From IMG/VR virus record IMGVR_UViG_3300025360_000021, positions 1 to 15,922 of that record: a stretch of 15,922 bases of DNA; one strand, written 5' to 3'. The translations under genes and the position numbers were made by a program. Position 1 is the first letter of the stretch, and each line of letters opens with the position of its first letter. The notes beneath the pieces were generated by a model. It ran no database searches. It saw only the letters and a program-made list of their open reading frames with translations, and was not told where the DNA came from. Shown one piece after another: positions 3,571-15,386 of this stretch.

Positions 3571-3593
3571 AAAAATGAGGATTGGACACGTTG

Positions 3594-3606
3594 ATTAAAA
3601 ATAAAT
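3594..3606 (+). promoter_or_regulatory. Motif variant ATTAAAAATAAAT upstream of the capsid gene
   Basis: 1 mismatch to consensus; 29 nt to ATG 3636. Confidence 0.72.
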
Positions 3607-3635
3607 TAATGTTTGCCTATGGAAACGTGACCAAT

Positions 3636-4022
3636 ATGGCTAGAGGGAGAGGCCTACCTAAGCCTGGAAATTCGAGGCTAGCGAAGTGGCAGGCTAAGTA
3701 CGATCCAACGGTAGTGCAAACAAGGTTCACTGAGGTACAGCCAGTTGCCGTAAGTAGGGCACAGGAGGGTATAGTAAGTATCGCAAACGTGCAATCTCTG
3801 ATAGGTGGCGTACTTGATCAGTACGGTATCGCAGGTCCAATGAGGGCAACATACATCGCCTTCGGCGAAAAGGTTTGGCACGCAACACAAAGGCTAACTG
3901 GGCAAGCGCTTGCTAACGAGGTGAATGGTCTCACGTCATACTTCCAAACCGCATTCGGTGCTAACCCAACAATACTACAGGCAATAGCCCAAGCCCTTGG
4001 CGTCAGCGGTTTGACTTACTAA
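3636..4022 (+). CDS. Major capsid protein, rudivirus (SIRV2 P134-like) fold
   Basis: 128 aa. R.AKWQAK, VL.QYGI.GP.RA.Y..FG.KV, G.AL.N..NGL..Y...AF.ANP.IL match the SIRV coat protein as recalled. Start set at MARGRG. Confidence 0.92.
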   Translation: MARGRGLPKPGNSRLAKWQAKYDPTVVQTRFTEVQPVAVSRAQEGIVSIANVQSLIGGVLDQYGIAGPMRATYIAFGEKVWHATQRLTGQALANEVNGLTSYFQTAFGANPTILQAIAQALGVSGLTY

Positions 4023-7321: not shown

Positions 7322-8002
7322 ATGGGTATTCCGTTGCCGTTGGTATCGTGTAGTGATAGTACTCTTTCACTATCCAGTTTTTCGGGAAGCGTTACTCTAA
7401 CATTGCACTGCCCTGGCGATTTGATAGAACCAACGCTGTGGAACAATAGGCGATTATGCTTGGAATACCAGTTGTGCTATCTCGGTTTGTTGATTCAGCA
7501 AATAAGTAATCAAAACCTTGGCGTTGGTGATTCATTAACGAATCAGTACAATAATGTCGTTAGTGAGTTATCGAGTTTGCCACCTGTGACGGCAGGACAG
7601 CCAGTCACTCACGAACAATTCAATGCGATTTGGGATCACATCAACCTTGCGTACAACGTATTGACTAATTTCTTCAGTATCGTGTGGGGCTATGGATCAT
7701 TACAACCTGCCCAGGTCGTTCCATATGAGAACCAGTTATTGTACGTCATCAACAACATACCGAAGAAAAAAACGATGGATCTGATGAAATCGAGTGACTG
7801 GAACGCATTGACACAAGCGTTGTACGCAATTGATCAAATATTACAATACATAAAGCAAAATTGGTTGTTACCTGCCATGCAAGGGCAAGTAACGTTTGCA
7901 GGGGTAAACGTGATTGCGACTACATCATTTAGTTCACCATCGATAACCACATCTATCACTAAGGCATCTACGTCAATGACTACGTCGGCAGGTACTGGAT
8001 AA
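7322..8002 (+). CDS. Putative fibre/structural protein with two SDWN-like repeats and a Ser/Thr-rich C-terminal tag
   Basis: PVTHEQFNAIWDHI and LMKSSDWNALTQAL; ends TTSFSSPSITTSITKASTSMTTSAGTG. Confidence 0.75.
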   Translation: MGIPLPLVSCSDSTLSLSSFSGSVTLTLHCPGDLIEPTLWNNRRLCLEYQLCYLGLLIQQISNQNLGVGDSLTNQYNNVVSELSSLPPVTAGQPVTHEQFNAIWDHINLAYNVLTNFFSIVWGYGSLQPAQVVPYENQLLYVINNIPKKKTMDLMKSSDWNALTQALYAIDQILQYIKQNWLLPAMQGQVTFAGVNVIATTSFSSPSITTSITKASTSMTTSAGTG

Positions 8003-8010
8003 TTACCGTG

Positions 8011-8023
8011 ATTAAAAACAAAT
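8011..8023 (+). promoter_or_regulatory. Conserved upstream motif ATTAAAAACAAAT
   Basis: Exact copy; 25 nt to ATG 8049. Confidence 0.8.
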
Positions 8024-8048
8024 GAGTGATTACGATTCATTGTTTTGT

Positions 8049-8222
8049 ATGAGTAACACGGTGGGCAGTGCAACGTGTAATGTAAAGGATTTAATGACTA
8101 AGCAACAACCATTCATCAAATTCCCAATAGTAACTACGTCCACATCATTTAGTTCACCATCAATATCGGTGGTTATTGCCAAGGCATCCACATCAATGAC
8201 TACGTCGGCAGGTACTGGGTAA
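8049..8222 (+). CDS. 57-aa protein consisting largely of the shared Ser/Thr-rich C-terminal tag
   Basis: ATG 8022 lies inside the motif, whereas ATG 8049 fits the 25-nt spacing. Ends TSFSSPSISVVIAKASTSMTTSAGTG with synonymous divergence from the upstream copy. Confidence 0.75.
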   Translation: MSNTVGSATCNVKDLMTKQQPFIKFPIVTTSTSFSSPSISVVIAKASTSMTTSAGTG

Positions 8223-8230
8223 CTATCGTG

Positions 8231-8243
8231 ATTAAAAACAAAT
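8231..8243 (+). promoter_or_regulatory. Conserved upstream motif ATTAAAAACAAAT
   Basis: Exact copy; 23 nt to GTG 8267. Confidence 0.8.
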
Positions 8244-8266
8244 GATTAAATGCCATTTACATCGAT

Positions 8267-9133
8267 GTGTCAATAGCAATTGAGGAAATAGCAAGGAATT
8301 ACATTAGGTACGGTGCAAAAAGGCTAGGCATCGAGGATAGGTTAAATCGATTCACGGCATACATAAAATCGCTAGATAAATCATGTGCAAGGAATGATGT
8401 TGTATCTCACTACGTGGATTCGGTCTTCCTACCAATCCTGGAAAATAGCGAACAATTAGCCGTTGCCGTAAGCAAAAAAGAAATCCCTAGATATTATAGA
8501 AATAGATTTACTAGGGCACTTAGTACTAGGGATAGGGCTTTCATTAGGTGGTTCCTAAAGAATTACGTAATGAATTACACGGATGTTGATGCTGTGGTTA
8601 GCAATAACTACCAATTACTCCCGTGCTTCTTCGGTTACTGCTTTAATGTTTGCCCTATTGGTGGTGGTACATGTGCCAGCAATGCGGTTTATACATGCCT
8701 ATCCCTCACTGAGTTGCCTCAGACACAGCCTTGCTGTACTGGGACTTATTTTAATGCCTATGGTAAGGTTTTTGACCTGGTTGATAATGCACCATGGGTT
8801 AGTAGCTACAGTACTGGTGGGTTTGGCATTAATACCCAAGTACCTCAATCCGCAGGAACGTTTACACTAACTGGGAGTGTAACGGGACCATCCTGCTTTC
8901 CATCAAGCGGTGTAACCCTTAACCTAGACCTTATTGTGAGTGTTACTGGTTCTACTAGTGGTACATGTGCCAGTAGTTGCCCAAGTGGTGCACCGTGTAT
9001 TACTACAGGTGTTCCGTATTGCCCAGGTACAGTGTATAGTGTAGCTTATTTCCCAGTGCTTTACTACAGCGTTAATCAAACCGTATTGCCTAACTCATCA
9101 TATAGTGTTTGGTGGCAGGTTTCTGTTTCATGA
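8267..9133 (+). CDS. Cys-rich probable virion/attachment protein
   Basis: 288 aa with a basic helical N-terminal third and a Gly/Ser/Thr/Cys-rich beta C-terminal region; 13 Cys; GTCAS occurs twice. Confidence 0.72.
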   Translation: MSIAIEEIARNYIRYGAKRLGIEDRLNRFTAYIKSLDKSCARNDVVSHYVDSVFLPILENSEQLAVAVSKKEIPRYYRNRFTRALSTRDRAFIRWFLKNYVMNYTDVDAVVSNNYQLLPCFFGYCFNVCPIGGGTCASNAVYTCLSLTELPQTQPCCTGTYFNAYGKVFDLVDNAPWVSSYSTGGFGINTQVPQSAGTFTLTGSVTGPSCFPSSGVTLNLDLIVSVTGSTSGTCASSCPSGAPCITTGVPYCPGTVYSVAYFPVLYYSVNQTVLPNSSYSVWWQVSVS

Positions 9134-9145
9134 TTAAAAACAAAT
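9133..9145 (+). promoter_or_regulatory. Conserved upstream motif ATTAAAAACAAAT
   Basis: Exact copy overlapping the upstream TGA; 24 nt to ATG 9170. Confidence 0.8.
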
Positions 9146-9169
9146 TTTTTCGTTTCCTGTGTCAAATCG

Positions 9170-9946
9170 ATGGGTAAGTACAAAATCCTTTTTGAGGGGG
9201 ATCGAACGATTGTGGTTCAACTGAAGGATGGGATTAAGGCGCAAGACTTGGTTGAAAAAGGCGTTTTCATTCAGAAGGCAGATGGTCTTTATGATAAGAA
9301 AGGTAGGAAGGTGATCATCAGCGATAGGGAGTTTTTTCGCATAGGTGAACCGAGACTTGTTGGTTCATGCGGTGGTTCCGTGTATGAGATATTTGATAAC
9401 GTAGTCGTTAGTGCAGGGCATGTGATGGATTGCGTGGACAGTCTCATTGTGGATAACACGAATTATAAACTAGTGAATAAGGAAGTAATGCTTCCTGGCA
9501 CTTATCCGCAATGGTTGTGGTATATATTCGATTTGTTTGGTTACGAACCCTATAGCCCTTATGACTACGGCATAGCCACAATCCAAGCTAATCAATCGAT
9601 CAAGTACAATGCTGATAAGCCGTATCCACACGCTATCTATGTGGCAGGTAATTGCATGTCCAAGTACGATCAGAATTGTTTAGGGATTGCACTTGCAACA
9701 CCGAACATGGAAATATCAGACCTAAATGCCTTAATCGATAGGCAGTTAATGCTTGATTGCACATACTGGAACTACCAAGCAGTTGCGGTTGGTGTTGATG
9801 TAGGTAAAGTATTCGTTAATTACGGCGATGGTGAGTACGCATTACTGAGACCTGCCCTACTAATGCGATTCCTGAATTTATCGGGAATACCAGGTTGTTC
9901 GGGCAGTATGGTTTACCCAACGACGTCGTACCCAGACTTTCCATAA
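9170..9946 (+). CDS. Putative chymotrypsin/trypsin-like serine protease (clan PA)
   Basis: CGGSVY...VVVSAGHV (H84), YDYGIATI (D132) and PGCSGSMV (S244) in canonical H-D-S order. Confidence 0.72.
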   Translation: MGKYKILFEGDRTIVVQLKDGIKAQDLVEKGVFIQKADGLYDKKGRKVIISDREFFRIGEPRLVGSCGGSVYEIFDNVVVSAGHVMDCVDSLIVDNTNYKLVNKEVMLPGTYPQWLWYIFDLFGYEPYSPYDYGIATIQANQSIKYNADKPYPHAIYVAGNCMSKYDQNCLGIALATPNMEISDLNALIDRQLMLDCTYWNYQAVAVGVDVGKVFVNYGDGEYALLRPALLMRFLNLSGIPGCSGSMVYPTTSYPDFP

Positions 9947-9958: not shown

Positions 9959-9979
9959 TATTCGTTGTGGATTTTCAAA

Positions 9980-10618
9980 ATGACTATGGACATCCCATCT
10001 GTGATTAGGACTATGGGATGGAAGAAAACACTACCGATAATGCTGTTACTACTAACTATAACGCCAACGGTCTTTGCACAGAGTGGTGGCGATCAAATCA
10101 TATACATAGATCCGTACTCATTGATAATGCTGTTAATATTCCTAGCCATCGGATTAGCACTTATTGCTTTCGTGTTCGGTTTTATCTACAACGCAAGTGC
10201 GCAAGATAAGTTTATTTCTGTTTATCAACAAACATCACAAGCACAGACAACGATCATGAATTCCATGGCACAGGCAATAACGACAAACCTAAATGTACAA
10301 ACAGGCGTTATGTTAGAGGAAGCAAGACACAGGATGAATATGGATGATAGGTGGTATAATTTGATGGCACAGCAACAAGCCTTTATGCAATACTTAGAGA
10401 ATAGGCAAGAAAACACGTACGAAAAGCAAGTTGATGCTAACATACAGTTCATGAACAACGTGTTCAACCTGCTAGCCATGCAAACGGCATTTAGTGATAT
10501 ATCGCAACTCAATACGACTAAGCTTAAGGCTATGGCTATACAGTCCGCCAAGCCTTACGAGATTGAGGTCGTAACGACGGAAACGCCTGAGAAAAAGGAA
10601 ACGACCACGAAGACGTGA
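9980..10618 (+). CDS. Membrane protein: signal-peptide-like N-terminus, one TM helix and a long Gln/Met-rich helical domain
   Basis: KKTLPIMLLLLTITPTVFA-Q resembles a Sec signal; SLIMLLIFLAIGLALIAFVFGFIY is a TM segment. Start 9980 or 9986. Confidence 0.78.
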   Translation: MTMDIPSVIRTMGWKKTLPIMLLLLTITPTVFAQSGGDQIIYIDPYSLIMLLIFLAIGLALIAFVFGFIYNASAQDKFISVYQQTSQAQTTIMNSMAQAITTNLNVQTGVMLEEARHRMNMDDRWYNLMAQQQAFMQYLENRQENTYEKQVDANIQFMNNVFNLLAMQTAFSDISQLNTTKLKAMAIQSAKPYEIEVVTTETPEKKETTTKT

Positions 10619-10683: not shown

Positions 10684-10923
10684 ATGAGTACTAACGTGAG
10701 TGTTATCATTAGGGAGATACATAGGGCAGACGTTCCTGGGAACACACACTACATAGCAAGCGTGCAATTACTTGATGGCGAAGACGGTTGGGTAAGCCCT
10801 GCCTTTCCAGTTGATTTTCACGACAAACACGAACTAGAACGAAAAATAGCACAGGAAGTAACAATGTACGTCATGGCTAAGCAGAACTTCGGTAAGCACA
10901 TAGCCAGGGGCAGGTGGTTATGA
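10684..10923 (+). CDS. Small hypothetical protein (three strands plus helix), coupled to the large gene
   Basis: 79 aa; its TGA overlaps the next ATG (ATGA at 10920-10923). Confidence 0.78.
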   Translation: MSTNVSVIIREIHRADVPGNTHYIASVQLLDGEDGWVSPAFPVDFHDKHELERKIAQEVTMYVMAKQNFGKHIARGRWL

Positions 10924-13900
10924 GTTACATACCATTCAACATAGATGAAATCAAGGTATTAATCCAGGACAACCTAGCCAACGGCGTAATCGAGAAATCA
11001 TTATCAGAACTGAAGGAAACGGATCTAGCCAAGGCAGTCATCGAGTATGGTGGTTTAACCGATCCAATAGGGCAGTTGGAATCATGGATAGCACAGCAAT
11101 TACAATCGTTCGGTAATTGGTTGGTTCAATCATTCCAGGCAATCATTAGCCCTATCGTTTCGGCTATCAACACGGTATCGAGTTATGTGGCACAGGGGTT
11201 TGCATCGTTATCATCAATGATTACGCAATCGTTCCAGTCATTCGCATCGCAAATAACTAGTGCATTATCGAGTATCCAATCGGCATTCCAATCCTTGGGA
11301 TCAACATTCCAATCATTCGCTAGCCAATTGGGATCAACGTTACAGTCATTCTTTAGCCAAATATCGTATGCATTGACTACGGCATTCTCTCAATTATCGA
11401 GTGCATTCCAGAGTTTGGGATCACAGATCCAAGGTGCATTCTCGGGCATTGTTTCGGCATTGAGTTCCTTAGGATCCCAAGTACAATCGGCATTGAGTAA
11501 CTTCGCCAACGTACTAACACACGTTGTTTTTCCGAGTATCCAGAATTGGATCACGTCAGTCGTTAATTCTGTAATAAGTGGCTTACAGTCATTCGCAAGC
11601 CAGGCACAGACTGTCTTTAGCAACATCGTGAGTGGGATAGAGTCATTCGGCAAGACATTGGAAGGTGTACTAGGCACGTTCTGGAATGATTTACAGAATG
11701 CGTTTAGCACGATCGGTAAGTACGTAACTGGTTTCGTATCATCGATAGAGAAAGGGTTTGAGCAATTCATCAAGGATGTCCAAGCATTCGGTGGCATGAT
11801 ACAATCAACACTATCAAGCATTGGATCCCTCATTCTAAAGGGTTTCGTGGATATCGGCAGGGGATTTGAGTCGTTATTTAGCGATATTCAGAAGGTGTTT
11901 GCGGGATTCGTAAAGTTCATGGAAGGGATACCGAAGATGCTAAGTGAGATCCCAAGTAAGGTCTTTGAGGCTGTGTATAAAGCATTTTTAGACTTCCTAA
12001 AGATCACGGGCATCGATAAGGCGTTTACAATCATTGTTGATTTCTTTAGGAACGTGGCTAAGTTCTTCGAGAATTTGGGAAATAACCCAATCATTAAGGC
12101 GATAATTAAGGACTTTGAGTTGTTCGCATCGGGCATCGAAAATGCATTCACTAATTTCTATAATATATTAATAGGAATATATCACTGGATAGCTAAAGCA
12201 TTGCAATCCTTGGCAACTGATTTCATGAACACCGCTAAGTCGTTGGCAAGCAGTTTCTTGGGTTTGGGTAAGGGATTTACGTCGTTCGTTGTTGATATTA
12301 CTAAGTTCGGTGTTTCATCGCTTTACCTACCTGTGGCGATTGAGACGTTGCCGTTACTAATGACAATGAGTATTTTCAAATCGGAACCGTACATAATCAT
12401 AAAGAGTGGTGTGGATCCCATCAAAGTTGCGATTCCCGATCTAATTAATGCGTTCGGTGCTATATCGCTGATTTCGGCATCCGTGTTCGGTGTCGTGTAC
12501 GGCATAGGTGCATTGATTGAGAAAATCGGATCAGCAACTGGATCCCAAGAAATAGATTTGTCACCATTGGGATTAGGTGTAAAGCTAAGGCTTAACCTAG
12601 GCAAGCTATTGGAACCAATCGGTAACCTACTCGAAAAGGTTGGTGATGAAATAGGCAGGGGCTTAGCACTAAGCGGTTCGTTAGCGTTTATGGAACCGTT
12701 ACGTTATATATGGCGTTACGTGTGGTGGTTGGTGTTCTACGCCATGGGTATGGGAAACATGCCGTTCGAACTACCTGGACATCACGAATTGTTTGACATT
12801 GCCAGGAGGTTCGATGTTACACAAAACATAAACTATATAGCTAACACAATGATATATAGAGGCTTCCCGTACTGGTATATAGCAAAAACAATAGCATTGC
12901 CAACCACGTTCACATCTATAGACGTGGCTAATCAAGCGTTAGGTGATTTCAAAAAGGAAATACAGAATAACTACATCACGGTGGTTGATAAGTTCGGGAA
13001 TACCAGGATCATACCGATTGCACCATTGTTTGAATTGCCAACGACACACGACTTGGTTGAATTCATGCTTAGGGATTTGTTCCTACCTGCCAGGGCACCG
13101 CCTGCCGAACAACCTGCATTAGCATATCAATCATTTATCAAGGCTATGTGGGCACGTGGTGTACCACCAGACGTTGCGTACATGTACTATCTCAGGGCTT
13201 ATGAACTTCCATCAGCAACGCAAGTGTGGGATTTCACAATGAGGGCATTGTCAGGGTTTGCATGGTACGTACCACCGCAGGAAGTACAAACGTTCGCCGA
13301 ATCCGAAGCCAAAATAATCAACGCATTCGTTCCGCAGGTGCCTGCCAAGCTTAACTTCCAGTATAACCTTGTGTTGTTAGCATTGGCAGAGTATCAAAAG
13401 TGGCACGGTAGGGCTCATTTTGCTTGGATTAATGATCCAACGACTGGGAAATCATATACATCTGATGCGTGGTTGATTATTGATCAATCAGCTCACTTAC
13501 TCGATAGGACTGACATTGAGCACCTGGTACGTCATGGCATTTGGGATTACTATCAGAGGAAGTACGGTATTACTAACGAAACAACTATGTACGATGTGTT
13601 GGGTAAGGTTGTGGAACCGCAACCAACGTCACCGATTCAAATATACACGGACTACGTCACGAACGTGTTGATGGCTAGGGGCTTCCATCCGTACGTTGCA
13701 CCGTTGATAGCATTACGTAATGTCTTTGACGTAACGACTGGTGCAAAGACCTTGCTAAGGACAGGTTTGCTGAATCTGATTAGGGAGAATATTGAGTTGA
13801 TACCGATTGCGTTGCAATTAATGAGTCATTTCTTCGATGTGTCCGTGCACGTTGCTTACTTCGATATGTATAACCAAAAGTGGGTAACGGGATGGCTTAA

Positions 13901-15230
13901 TGCACCAGTCCGTTACCTGGATCCCGAGGCTAAGTTACTAGTGCTCAGGGCATTGATGGACAAAGTCAATACGTTTATGAGGTATATGTTCCGTGCACTG
14001 GAATACGGCGTTAGGGATTACCTGGTTGGTGTTAATGACTCAATAAACTACATGGTAGGGTACGTAAAAGACGTGTTGGATAAGTACTATGCACCGCTCT
14101 ATAAATCCATAACAGGCGTTGAAATGCACCTAACATGGGATTCAGCATTTAACGACGCCATAGCTAAGTACTTTGAGATAGAGCAACTGATTGGTACATT
14201 CCGTAGAATTAGGTATTATGCCAGGTATGCGTTATATAGGATCCTAGGGATCATAGGCATGGGGCTTATTCCAAAGACAGAGATTCCTAAGTATATTGAT
14301 GAATTAACAACATTAATGAAAGAAACACCACAAGCAAAGGAAGTATTCATGTTCATTTCAGACCTGGTTTATCACAGATACTTGCTTAGGAACTATGAAA
14401 CGATGGTTAGGGTTTGGTTGGGCAGGCATGCAATGACAATCGATCAAGCCTTGCAAACATTGTTGGCACAGAACATAGATCCAGACTACGCAAAAGCCTT
14501 AGTCAATGCATACGCTAGCCCGTATTATCCAACGATTGTGCAATTGATTGTAATGAGTGAGTACAACCCTGCCTTTTTGGGTAAGCTAGGGCAGGTAATA
14601 CAACTAATGAGGATTCCACAAGATTGGGCACAGATTTGGCAAGATTACGCATACATAAGGGCTTATGTTAGGTGGTTCATACGTGCATTGAATGAGGTCG
14701 TTACTGTGGTTTCCAGGATACCACTGACTGTGAAAATAGTCATGCCAATGACGCAGGGCAATAAGACGGTTACATTGCAGGATGTTGTGAATGATATGTT
14801 TAAGCAAGCACAAGCGTTTGGTTTTGATAGTACTAAGCTTAGCTTCGTTAAGGAACTAATAGACTTTAGGTACGTACTTACTCAATACAGGAATTCAATC
14901 CCAACGCCGTGGCATGCATTGAATTTAACATACTACCTGCCAGACCCTGACACGTTCATAGACAACCTATCACAGAACTGGATCATATCGCAATACGGAG
15001 TATCACTAATCAAGACACTGGCAAGGTTTAGGAAGTACGGCAGGTGGATGTTCGAGACCGTGTACTGGGCAGTCAGGGCTTATGCACGTGGTTACATGGC
15101 AGGGCAAGACCTATACCAATTCTTGCAATCCCTACAATCGTTTGGATTGTCTAAGTACGACATCGAGATGATTAGGAACTGGGCATTCGCAATGAGTTGT
15201 TACTACGGTGCATGCCAATACCCATGGTAA
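10920..15230 (+). CDS. Large virion protein with tape-measure-like amphipathic repeats, candidate terminal fibre/end-structure protein
   Basis: About 1436 aa; GGTGG SD before ATG 10920. N-terminal 7/11-residue F/L-Q-S repeats, a hydrophobic middle segment and a helical-repeat C-terminal half. Size and position are analogous to the largest rudivirus protein (SIRV2 P1070). Confidence 0.8.
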   Translation: MSYIPFNIDEIKVLIQDNLANGVIEKSLSELKETDLAKAVIEYGGLTDPIGQLESWIAQQLQSFGNWLVQSFQAIISPIVSAINTVSSYVAQGFASLSSMITQSFQSFASQITSALSSIQSAFQSLGSTFQSFASQLGSTLQSFFSQISYALTTAFSQLSSAFQSLGSQIQGAFSGIVSALSSLGSQVQSALSNFANVLTHVVFPSIQNWITSVVNSVISGLQSFASQAQTVFSNIVSGIESFGKTLEGVLGTFWNDLQNAFSTIGKYVTGFVSSIEKGFEQFIKDVQAFGGMIQSTLSSIGSLILKGFVDIGRGFESLFSDIQKVFAGFVKFMEGIPKMLSEIPSKVFEAVYKAFLDFLKITGIDKAFTIIVDFFRNVAKFFENLGNNPIIKAIIKDFELFASGIENAFTNFYNILIGIYHWIAKALQSLATDFMNTAKSLASSFLGLGKGFTSFVVDITKFGVSSLYLPVAIETLPLLMTMSIFKSEPYIIIKSGVDPIKVAIPDLINAFGAISLISASVFGVVYGIGALIEKIGSATGSQEIDLSPLGLGVKLRLNLGKLLEPIGNLLEKVGDEIGRGLALSGSLAFMEPLRYIWRYVWWLVFYAMGMGNMPFELPGHHELFDIARRFDVTQNINYIANTMIYRGFPYWYIAKTIALPTTFTSIDVANQALGDFKKEIQNNYITVVDKFGNTRIIPIAPLFELPTTHDLVEFMLRDLFLPARAPPAEQPALAYQSFIKAMWARGVPPDVAYMYYLRAYELPSATQVWDFTMRALSGFAWYVPPQEVQTFAESEAKIINAFVPQVPAKLNFQYNLVLLALAEYQKWHGRAHFAWINDPTTGKSYTSDAWLIIDQSAHLLDRTDIEHLVRHGIWDYYQRKYGITNETTMYDVLGKVVEPQPTSPIQIYTDYVTNVLMARGFHPYVAPLIALRNVFDVTTGAKTLLRTGLLNLIRENIELIPIALQLMSHFFDVSVHVAYFDMYNQKWVTGWLNAPVRYLDPEAKLLVLRALMDKVNTFMRYMFRALEYGVRDYLVGVNDSINYMVGYVKDVLDKYYAPLYKSITGVEMHLTWDSAFNDAIAKYFEIEQLIGTFRRIRYYARYALYRILGIIGMGLIPKTEIPKYIDELTTLMKETPQAKEVFMFISDLVYHRYLLRNYETMVRVWLGRHAMTIDQALQTLLAQNIDPDYAKALVNAYASPYYPTIVQLIVMSEYNPAFLGKLGQVIQLMRIPQDWAQIWQDYAYIRAYVRWFIRALNEVVTVVSRIPLTVKIVMPMTQGNKTVTLQDVVNDMFKQAQAFGFDSTKLSFVKELIDFRYVLTQYRNSIPTPWHALNLTYYLPDPDTFIDNLSQNWIISQYGVSLIKTLARFRKYGRWMFETVYWAVRAYARGYMAGQDLYQFLQSLQSFGLSKYDIEMIRNWAFAMSCYYGACQYPW

Positions 15231-15236
15231 TTACCC

Positions 15237-15249
15237 ATTAAAAACAAAT
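15237..15249 (+). promoter_or_regulatory. Conserved upstream motif ATTAAAAACAAAT
   Basis: Exact copy; 26 nt to ATG 15276. Confidence 0.8.
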
Positions 15250-15275
15250 TATACATATCATTCTATCTAGGATGT

Positions 15276-15386
15276 ATGGGTAAGTCAGGACTACCTAAGG
15301 ATGGTAAGTCCAGGTTCGAAAAGTGGTTAGCAAAGTATGATCCAGAGGTGATAAGGAAACGTTTTGAGGAATCAATGCAGGGATAA
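15276..15386 (+). CDS. 36-aa mini-paralogue of the major capsid protein N-terminal DNA-binding arm
   Basis: MGKSGLPKDGKSRFEKWLAKYDPEVIRKRFEESMQG; 18/28 identical to capsid residues 6-33; has its own motif copy; absent from the supplied ORF track. Confidence 0.8.
   Translation: MGKSGLPKDGKSRFEKWLAKYDPEVIRKRFEESMQG

Follow-up and report, generated by a model that had tools for sequence, protein, structure and literature searches.

Bacterial chymotrypsin-type proteases of MEROPS family S1 (streptogrisins A/B, alpha-lytic protease, NAPase), together with Rv3671c/MarP and HtrA, share the two-barrel fold of clan PA, catalytic residues in the order His, Asp, Ser, a TN-x-HV-type His loop, and a G-x-S-G nucleophile loop. 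In these canonical enzymes the Ser lies between the third and fourth strands of the second barrel, and about 50 residues (three strands plus a helix) follow it. Rice NAL1 (PDB 7y77, 8pn1, 8has) has small N-terminal beta-rich domain(s) followed by a PA protease domain (PMC12012508), with canonical barrel topology (triad H234/D291/S385 of 458+ aa), an ATP-binding domain, and a hexameric cage. The alphavirus capsid protein (togavirin, MEROPS S3) is a chymotrypsin-fold serine protease that is also a virion structural protein; it has canonical topology and cleaves at its own C-terminus.

In filamentous viruses of archaea (realm Adnaviria), two groups of proteins are relevant here. The betalipothrixvirus “virion structural protein” family comprises AFV3/AFV6/AFV8 ORF267 and AFV9 ORF269 (phrog_18698), and also SSRV2 ORF53/ORF51 and SSFV3. 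The tristromavirus PFV1 structural protein VP3 (UniProt A0A140F3K9) is a major virion protein (PMC12662031, PMC7189273), described as a matrix/sheath or envelope-associated protein of an enveloped virion, and the TTV1 20.2 kDa protein (P19300) accompanies it in our comparisons. None of the lipothrixvirus proteins is annotated as a protease, and our literature search found no paper calling PFV1 VP3 or the AFV ORF267/269 proteins proteases. We describe a gene of a rudivirus-like hot-spring virus for a previously unannotated, predicted chymotrypsin-fold serine protease, in which the strands of the second barrel appear to be re-ordered relative to the canonical enzymes.

A predicted protease gene in a rudivirus-like genome

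The window is the whole 15,922-nucleotide IMG/VR contig IMGVR_UViG_3300025360_000021. The gene, which has an ATG start, and the features discussed below are as follows.

9170..9946 (+), target ORF, 258 aa plus stop: N-terminal domain, linker, then a predicted chymotrypsin-fold protease domain
9170..9334 (+), N-terminal beta-rich domain (residues 1-55; G10, G31, G45, V48 conserved), a candidate pro-domain or docking domain
9335..9349 (+), inter-domain linker (residues 56-60, FRIGE), inferred candidate processing site
9350..9583 (+), barrel 1 (residues 61-138) with canonical element order: strands, short His helix (83-86), two strands, an inserted helix (114-122), then Asp and the last strand
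9368..9433 (+), C67 to C88, probable disulphide (inferred) bracketing the His loop, comparable to trypsin C42-C58
9419..9421 (+), H84, predicted general base
9563..9565 (+), D132, predicted triad acid
9626..9703 (+), two extra strands between barrel 1 and the A2-like strand (residues 153-178), proposed stand-ins for the missing post-Ser strands E2/F2, followed by helix 182-188
9743..9871 (+), three strands preceding the Ser (residues 192-234), equated with canonical A2-B2-C2 through the lipothrixvirus family
9890..9907 (+), P-G-C-S244-G-S, predicted nucleophile and oxyanion motif (G-x-S-G-x as in G-D-S-G-G)
9908..9943 (+), C-terminal tail of 12 residues from M247: one short strand at 247-250, then disordered
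9965..10618 (+), conserved neighbour: a membrane protein with a signal-like N-terminus, a TM segment at about 50-76, and a long coiled coil
3582..4022 (+), rudivirus-type major capsid protein (MCP)
10914..15230 (+), 1438-aa structural ORF with a coiled-coil N-terminus resembling tape-measure proteins

The first-pass annotation had noticed, from the sequence alone, a trypsin-like set of motifs in this ORF, and a residue-by-residue check confirmed that observation. The segment CGGSVYEIFDNVVVSAGHV is residues 67-85 and contains H84; YDYGIA is residues 131-136 and contains D132; PGCSGS is residues 241-246 and contains S244 (9899-9901). The stop follows residue 258, so exactly 14 residues follow the Ser, and the segment PHAIYVAG...LGIALATP, which had been singled out as resembling the missing strands, is residues 153-178. 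The N-terminal 60 residues, described as basic, are only mildly so (13 K/R against 10 D/E, net +3), while the rest of the protein is net -9. No TM segment or signal peptide was found in the protein.

The motifs are not chance. About 35 homologues exist, all on viral or metagenomic contigs, and in 21 homologues at 24-93% identity (mean column identity 38%) G69, S70, H84, V85, D132, A159, G160, C162, C170, A174, C197, Y218, and G242-C-S-G-S246 are invariant, including in members at only 24-26% identity. Conservation of H84, D132, and S244 had been set beforehand as a condition that could have overturned the protease reading, and it held. C67 and C88 are present together or absent together across the family. 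The chain ends 7-45 residues after the Ser across the family (median 12), and 7-14 residues after it in most members. The N-terminal domain, for which no Pfam match was found, is a separable module, as an HMM search recovered it as a stand-alone ORF of 56-63 aa at two other loci (L015 and L023).

By contrast, searches of Pfam, PHROGs, and PDB sequences with the protein and with the family profile gave no significant match. The target had no Pfam hit; among 17 family members tested, the best results were E 0.062 for Trypsin (PF00089) and E 0.26 at 12.5 bits for Trypsin_2 (PF13365), against a cut-off of 27.6, the latter in member P0030 over the barrel 1 region. Searches by blastn and tblastn against 50,697 phage and archaeal-virus records returned no match, so that classical rudiviruses lack a recognisable homologue. 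No relative was found in reference genomes of 185,579 species, and the gene is therefore not a host gene or a provirus in those genomes.

The genomic context is that of a rudivirus-like virus. The coat protein matches Sulf_coat_C (E 1.9e-25) and is about 40% identical to rudiviral MCPs, and the window also encodes two glycosyltransferases, a homologue of SIRV ORF268, and the 1438-aa ORF, which is related to the large structural protein of Stygiolobus rod-shaped virus, although the gene order differs from that of SIRV1. The target gene lies in a late/structural neighbourhood, but some family members sit in non-rudiviral contexts. The upstream 288-aa gene is not conserved, whereas the downstream membrane protein is found beside or near the target gene in 11 of 18 gene-carrying loci, upstream in some and downstream in others.

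Predicted fold and relationship to other viral proteins

An AlphaFold2 model of the target (pLDDT 88.7, pTM 0.80) shows the N-terminal ~55 residues as a separate domain behind the linker, which is the only internal segment with pLDDT below 50. In Foldseek searches of the PDB, all significant hits are clan PA proteases: all 18 hits with E <= 1e-3 are the serine protease NAL1 (best E about 1e-4, TM only about 0.4, identity about 11%), followed by picornaviral 3C proteases, Rv3671c (TMt 0.44), and the S. fradiae proteinase (TMt 0.45). TM-scores to canonical proteases are low (0.25-0.45), as expected for a permuted barrel under a sequential aligner, but this is also compatible with a looser resemblance. 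Among viral models in BFVD, the top hits are PFV1 VP3 (E 1.3e-6, TM 0.56/0.61), the AFV6 ORF267b protein A7WKJ8 (E 1.5e-6), D9CGA1, and TTV1 P19300 (E 6.2e-5); for VP3 and the TTV1 protein, the link rests on the fold match alone.

The relationship to the lipothrixvirus family is supported by profile–profile alignment. Hhalign places H, D, and S in register over 166-171 columns, with E 7.7e-6 and a probability of 84% for small profiles, while the probability dropped to 29% (E 5.7e-4) with larger profiles in the same register. Sequence identity is about 17-18%, the target has no PHROG hit at E <= 0.1, and the family HMM finds no ORF in the window; the target family is a sister family, not a member. 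The lipothrixvirus proteins carry TA[WY]H, [DE]-x-A-I, and canonical PGDSGG, where the target family has PGCSGS, and end 6-14 residues after the Ser. They lack the four invariant cysteines and helix 182-188 of the target family. The AlphaFold2 model of the AFV6 protein (pLDDT 90.8) again hits only PA proteases, with NAL1 as the top PDB match, and has the same architecture as the target: N-domain, disordered linker, barrel 1 with the His helix, Asp, five strands, Ser, one short strand, and the end of the chain. Both families have been found only in viruses of hyperthermophilic archaea.

The first barrel is canonical in its element order, and its His loop, of the TN-x-HV type seen in the bacterial enzymes, aligns with the catalytic His loop of HtrA (hhalign E 1e-3 to 1e-4), but over only 26-28 columns, and the chain leaves no room for a PDZ domain as in the HtrA/DegP family. 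The spacing of the predicted catalytic residues (H-48-D-112-S) fits the fold. The second barrel does not follow canonical topology, as five strands lie between the Asp and the Ser and one after in both models, compared to three and three in canonical enzymes, which is the count expected of a circularly permuted second barrel. The segment 153-178 is exactly the pair of extra strands.

Sequence evidence for the strand assignment is thinner. In the lipothrixvirus family the three pre-Ser strands align colinearly with residues 88-143 of S. griseus proteinase A (E 0.15). When separate segments of the target were aligned with an E. coli DegP/DegQ/DegS profile, segment 146-190 landed on the post-Ser strand GIGFAIP, but with E 0.2, and segment 189-258 landed on the A2 region with E 0.5. 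PDB searches with profiles of segments 148-190 and 189-252 gave only chance hits, and equating residues 153-178 with E2/F2 consequently has no significant sequence support.

Interpretation

We consider it likely, with fair though not full confidence, that the ORF encodes a soluble two-domain protein with a ~55-aa N-terminal beta-rich domain, a flexible linker, and a clan PA serine protease domain in which H84, D132, and S244 would form the catalytic triad and G242-C-S-G-S246 would supply the nucleophile and oxyanion loop. The second barrel is best read as a circular permutation that moved the last two strands ahead of the first: strands 153-178, then A2-B2-C2, then the Ser loop and one short strand. 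In this view, the protein is made late in infection, in the cytoplasm, is incorporated into or associated with the virion, and acts there as a serine endopeptidase, most likely processing itself (removal of the N-domain at the linker) and/or partner virion or membrane proteins such as the TM/coiled-coil neighbour. The ORF, its conservation, the model-based fold and element order, the homology to the lipothrixvirus family, and the gene neighbourhood come directly from our analysis, whereas catalytic activity, triad geometry, the permutation mapping, virion association in this virus, and the substrates are inferences; virion association is known only for distant relatives, from record annotation and reviews, and no isolate of the window's virus exists.

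The interpretation offered by the first-pass annotation is partly supported. Its trypsin-like fold, proposed triad, location in a structural module, separate N-terminal part, and rearranged second barrel agree with our results, and, as it suggested, no protease is listed among rudivirus core genes. Its proposed roles, a maturation protease for fibre or end proteins or an entry or exit enzyme cleaving S-layer or pili, remain conjecture. Because the structural relatives are annotated as virion structural proteins (PFV1 VP3, AFV9 ORF269) and the protein has no signal peptide or TM segment, a virion-associated or self-processing role is more likely than a secreted lytic enzyme.

A possible alternative, which we hold only tentatively, is that the chymotrypsin fold serves mainly as a building block of the virion (a matrix/sheath or envelope-associated layer), with catalysis absent or limited to one cis-cleavage during assembly, as in the alphavirus capsid protein, an analogy of function only from an unrelated virus realm; nothing here shows cis-cleavage. 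The best viral structural match is VP3, a major virion protein; the VP3 gene product is 230 aa, yet the virion protein is reported as 18 kDa, a difference of about the size of the N-domain that fits one self-cleavage, although this mass comes from SDS-PAGE as quoted in a review. The linker is disordered in both models. However, strict invariance of the whole triad and the G-x-S-G loop in two families fits an active enzyme, whether single- or multi-turnover, and does not fit a dead scaffold. In addition, the window's virus has a single rudivirus-type MCP and classical rudiviruses are non-enveloped, so a matrix role has no obvious place.

It is less likely that the protein is an entry or egress enzyme that cleaves host envelope proteins (S-layer, type IV pili) and works with the neighbouring membrane protein as a lysis or penetration cassette. 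The gene is linked to that neighbour, the window has no homologue of the rudiviral egress-pyramid protein P98, and rudiviruses that lack P98 are thought to use another release mechanism (bioRxiv 10.1101/2020.01.16.907410). On the other hand, without a signal peptide or TM segment the protein could reach the S-layer only as a virion component, the membrane neighbour is missing from several family-bearing contigs, and nothing here points to a host substrate.

A cysteine protease using C243 is very unlikely: although C243 is invariant in the target family and 3C cysteine proteases are among the fold hits, the motif register puts S244 at the nucleophile position, the equivalent of C243 is Asp or Glu in the lipothrixvirus family while the Ser is invariant, and C243 is more likely one of four invariant Cys (162, 170, 197, 243) that form disulphides. 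Chance resemblance, despite the lack of significant sequence hits and TM-scores below 0.5, can be all but dismissed, since two independent high-confidence models retrieve only PA proteases among significant hits and the order, spacing, and invariance of the three residues fit the fold.

A broader and more tentative possibility is that a circularly permuted chymotrypsin-fold serine protease is an ancient, shared virion component of rudivirus-like viruses, lipothrixviruses, and tristromaviruses, which would double as an abundant structural (matrix/sheath) protein after removing its own N-terminal pro-domain. That would make it an archaeal-virus counterpart of the alphavirus capsid protease, and the first protease and first natural barrel-2 permutant described in the realm Adnaviria.

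Archaeal filamentous viruses have almost no enzymes assigned to virion assembly. If the family is inactive, it would be a clear case of a protease fold exapted as a structural protein. If it is active, our results give a concrete biochemical function to a “virion structural protein” found in three families, add a shared non-capsid gene that links Ligamenvirales and Primavirales, and make proteolytic maturation of these virions directly testable, while offering a compact, disulphide-rich, hyperthermostable PA protease with an unusual strand order, useful for studying how the chymotrypsin fold tolerates permutation.

The predicted protease gene and its motifs

The window contains an ATG-initiated ORF on the plus strand that encodes a protein of 258 aa. 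The sequence features proposed for it in the first-pass annotation were checked by coordinate, and all of them were found as described:
9170..9946 (+), the ORF
residues 67-85, CGGSVYEIFDNVVVSAGHV, with H84 at 9419-9421
residues 131-136, YDYGIA, with D132 at 9563-9565
residues 153-178, PHAIYVAG...LGIALATP
residues 241-246, PGCSGS, with S244 at 9899-9901
Fourteen residues follow the Ser before the stop codon. The observation is correct as made, although the first 60 residues, which had been called basic, are only mildly so (net +3), while the rest of the protein is net -9. The protein has no TM segment or signal peptide, with a maximum 19-residue hydropathy of 1.08.

Genome context

The window is an entire IMG/VR contig, IMGVR_UViG_3300025360_000021, and carries the following features around the target gene:
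3582-4022, rudivirus-type major capsid protein (MCP; Pfam Sulf_coat_C, E 1.9e-25), about 40% identical to the MCPs of ARV3, SSRV1, MRV1 and the SIRVs
8267-9133 (+), 288-aa ORF just upstream of the target
9965-10618 (+), TM plus coiled-coil protein
10914-15230 (+), 1438-aa ORF related to a large ORF of Stygiolobus rod-shaped virus
15231-15383 (+), short ORF directly after the stop of the 1438-aa ORF and in the same frame
The window also encodes two GT-B glycosyltransferases and a homologue of SIRV ORF268. It showed no nucleotide similarity to any deposited virus, and its gene order differs from that of SIRV1. It represents a divergent rudivirus-like virus. The target lies in a same-strand block of putative structural genes, in agreement with the first-pass annotation.

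The N-terminal ~500 residues of the 1438-aa ORF gave many hits to phage tape-measure-protein families and to Baculo_PEP_C (coiled-coil-type similarity), while residues 393-1425 match the large ORF of Stygiolobus rod-shaped virus. The product of the short ORF behind it, taken from an internal ATG (about 36 aa), is 51% identical (E 7e-14) to the N-terminal ~45 residues of the MCP, and a corresponding ORF is present at 17034-17186 of L008, another contig carrying the family. The similarity extends upstream of the ATG, so the 5' end of the MCP gene and its leader appear to be duplicated. The 288-aa ORF has a Cys/Ser/Thr/Gly-rich C-terminal half and no detectable similarity to the gene at the same position in the colinear locus L001 (596 aa), and it is a variable slot in an otherwise conserved module.

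The TM plus coiled-coil protein lies beside or near the protease-like gene in 11 of 18 gene-carrying loci, upstream in some and downstream in others, which suggests a functional link. Its copies, of about 180-240 aa, share 27-32% identity with invariant Y-x-DP, Q-A, L-N and D-I-x-Q-L motifs, and occur in the window, at L003:3443-3988, L014:185-715 and L001:11945-12547, and in L008-L011; the copy in the window has an extra signal-peptide-like N-terminus. This protein could be a substrate, an anchor or an egress partner.

A family found in metagenomes and viral contigs

Two exhaustive protein searches and one profile search found about 35 clusters of homologues, all of them from metagenomes or viral contigs and none carrying a Pfam domain or an informative name. 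No relative was found in 185,579 reference genomes. In alignments reaching 24-26% identity, the invariant positions are G69, S70, H84, V85, P109, D132, A159, G160, C162, C170, A174, C197, Y218, A224 and G242-C-S-G-S246; conservation of the proposed triad in homologues, which had been set beforehand as a condition for the reading, therefore holds. C67 (9368-9370) and C88 (9431-9433) are present together or absent together across the family, which is the pattern of a disulphide bracketing the His loop. C162 (9653-9655), C170 (9677-9679), C197 (9758-9760) and C243 (9896-9898) are invariant in the target family but absent from the lipothrixvirus-type family treated below; together with C67 and C88 they suggest up to three disulphides, one of them next to the predicted nucleophile.

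Residues 1-55 form a separate beta-rich domain with no Pfam assignment. In two genomes the same module also exists as a stand-alone ORF of 56-63 aa (hmmsearch E 1.6e-4 and 0.01), at L023:4835-5026 (-) and L015:5641-5811 (-); these ORFs match only the N-terminal domain of the family (K-x-[IV]-G-E-G ... D-x-x-G-x-x-V-I) and occur in genomes that also carry the full-length gene.

The family occurs on contigs with a rudivirus-type MCP (the window, L001, L008-L011 and L022), but also on contigs with ParB/PD-(D/E)XK genes (L003 and L021) and beside a family-B DNA polymerase (L015 and L023). In the last two (JGI 3300045881; GCA_023270135.1), divergent members sit next to the polymerase, a DUF2153 protein and a MoxR-like AAA ATPase, and no Adnaviria-type MCP was detected on those contigs, so the family may extend beyond filamentous viruses.

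Predicted fold

No sequence library gave a significant hit, whether Pfam, PHROGs, or PDB sequences searched with a single sequence or a profile. When every member was scanned separately, only sub-threshold hits to Trypsin (E 0.062) and Trypsin_2 (E 0.26, on the His loop of the family member P0030) were obtained. In contrast, AlphaFold2 on the family alignment gave a confident model (pLDDT 88.7, pTM 0.80), in which only residues 56-60 and 254-258 fall below 50. Foldseek against the PDB returned 18 hits with E <= 1e-3, all of them the rice serine protease NAL1, followed by picornaviral 3C proteases, M. tuberculosis Rv3671c (TMt 0.44) and the S. fradiae proteinase (TMt 0.45). NAL1 is a canonical two-barrel serine protease preceded by small beta-rich domains (PMC12012508), an arrangement that explains why it ranks first. 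A profile comparison with E. coli DegP/DegQ/DegS aligned the family's G-S-V...V-T-N-W-H-V with the HtrA catalytic His loop (E 1e-3 to 1e-4).

Relatives in other archaeal filamentous viruses

Against predicted viral structures, the best hits were not RNA-virus proteases but proteins of archaeal filamentous viruses, namely PFV1 "structural protein VP3" (BFVD A0A140F3K9; E 1.3e-6, TM 0.56/0.61), A7WKJ8 of AFV6 (E 1.5e-6), D9CGA1 and the TTV1 20.2 kDa protein. AFV6 ORF267b aligns with the target family over its whole protease domain: TAWHN falls on TNWHV, YDVAI on YDYA, and a C-terminal IPGDSGGAVYI-stop on IPGCSGSMVYP. With small alignments hhalign gave a probability of 84% and E 7.7e-6 over 171 columns, whereas with larger alignments the register was identical but the probability fell to 29%, with E 5.7e-4. 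Sequence evidence alone is therefore borderline, while the fold match and the shared architecture make homology the reasonable conclusion.

The lipothrixvirus-type family comprises AFV3/6/8/9, SSRV2, SSFV3 and metagenomic members. Its His and Ser are invariant, the acidic position is D or E, the motif is PGDSGG, and the chain ends 6-14 residues after the Ser. Saccharolobus shibatae rod virus 2 (SSRV2, OQ473815.1) carries two tandem paralogues, ORF51 and ORF53, at 7948-8775 and 8779-9681, and ORF51 has a diverged H-G-E-S-G-S motif. The AlphaFold2 model for this family (pLDDT 90.8, pTM 0.90) again hit only PA proteases: NAL1, Rv3671c, streptogrisin B (TMt 0.48), NAPase (0.49), alpha-lytic protease, Mtb HtrA, V8 and chymase.

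These proteins are annotated as "virion structural protein" in GenBank and RefSeq records and in phrog_18698, and VP3 is described as an 18 kDa major virion protein forming a sheath or membrane-associated layer (PMC12662031, PMC7189273). We found no paper that calls any of them a protease, and a recent list of rudivirus core genes contains no protease.

Strand order in the second barrel

Barrel 1 of the model has the canonical order: strands 62-65, 68-75 and 78-81, the His helix 83-86, strands 89-94 and 97-107, an inserted helix 114-122, and then D132 directly before strand 133-138. After barrel 1 come strands 155-160 and 171-175, helix 182-188, strand 192-197, a long hairpin 202-217/222-234, the Ser loop, and one short strand 247-250. 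The AFV6 model has the same order. Canonical PA proteases have three strands before the Ser and three strands plus a helix after it, whereas here there are five before and one after, the total being unchanged. This is the arithmetic of a circular permutation that moves the last two strands (E2 and F2, with the C-terminal helix) ahead of A2.

There is independent support for calling the three pre-Ser strands A2-B2-C2. The only protease hits of the lipothrixvirus profile among PDB sequences are streptogrisins A and B and the S. fradiae proteinase, which align colinearly over 60 residues (profile 210-269 against SGPA 88-143) and end in PGDSGG; the E-values of 0.15-0.96 are not significant by themselves. 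The hhalign register transfers this mapping to target residues 192-250. The two strands that would be displaced are the segment 153-178 singled out in the first-pass annotation, and they hold five invariant residues. Their best hhalign placement on HtrA is the post-Ser strand GIGFAIP, but only with E 0.2, and segment searches of the PDB gave only chance hits. The low TM-scores to minimal PA proteases are what a sequential aligner would give for a permuted barrel. Taken together, we consider the permutation, as inferred from predicted models, somewhat more likely than not.

Inferred function

Most likely, the protein is an active clan PA serine endopeptidase with H84 as base, D132 as acid and S244 as nucleophile. 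In this view it would be made in the cytoplasm late in infection, would be associated with the virion as its relatives are, and would process itself at the flexible linker and/or other virion or membrane proteins. One observation fits the removal of a ~55-60-aa N-domain: the VP3 gene product is 230 aa (about 25 kDa), yet the virion protein is reported as 18 kDa, a difference of about the size of the N-terminal domain, although this is an inference from a mass quoted in a review. The ORF, the invariance of the triad, the predicted fold with its element order and the gene neighbourhood come from the analysis itself, whereas catalysis, self-processing, virion association in this virus and the substrates are inferred.

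Among the alternatives, a mainly structural or single-turnover role remains possible but is less likely, and an entry or egress enzyme acting on the host envelope together with the membrane neighbour is doubtful. A Cys243 nucleophile and a chance resemblance are both very unlikely.

The interpretation in the first-pass annotation is supported in part: its structural reading, a trypsin-like protein with a conserved triad, a rearranged second barrel and a separate N-terminal domain, is supported, while the biological roles it proposed stay hypothetical, and the data now lean towards a virion-associated protein. By HMM criteria the protein is not a member of any curated protease family, and in its predicted model it lacks the canonical topology of clan PA. 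It belongs to a sister family to the betalipothrixvirus ORF267/269 proteins, and it is apparently the first protease fold, as predicted here, to be recognised in this group of viruses.
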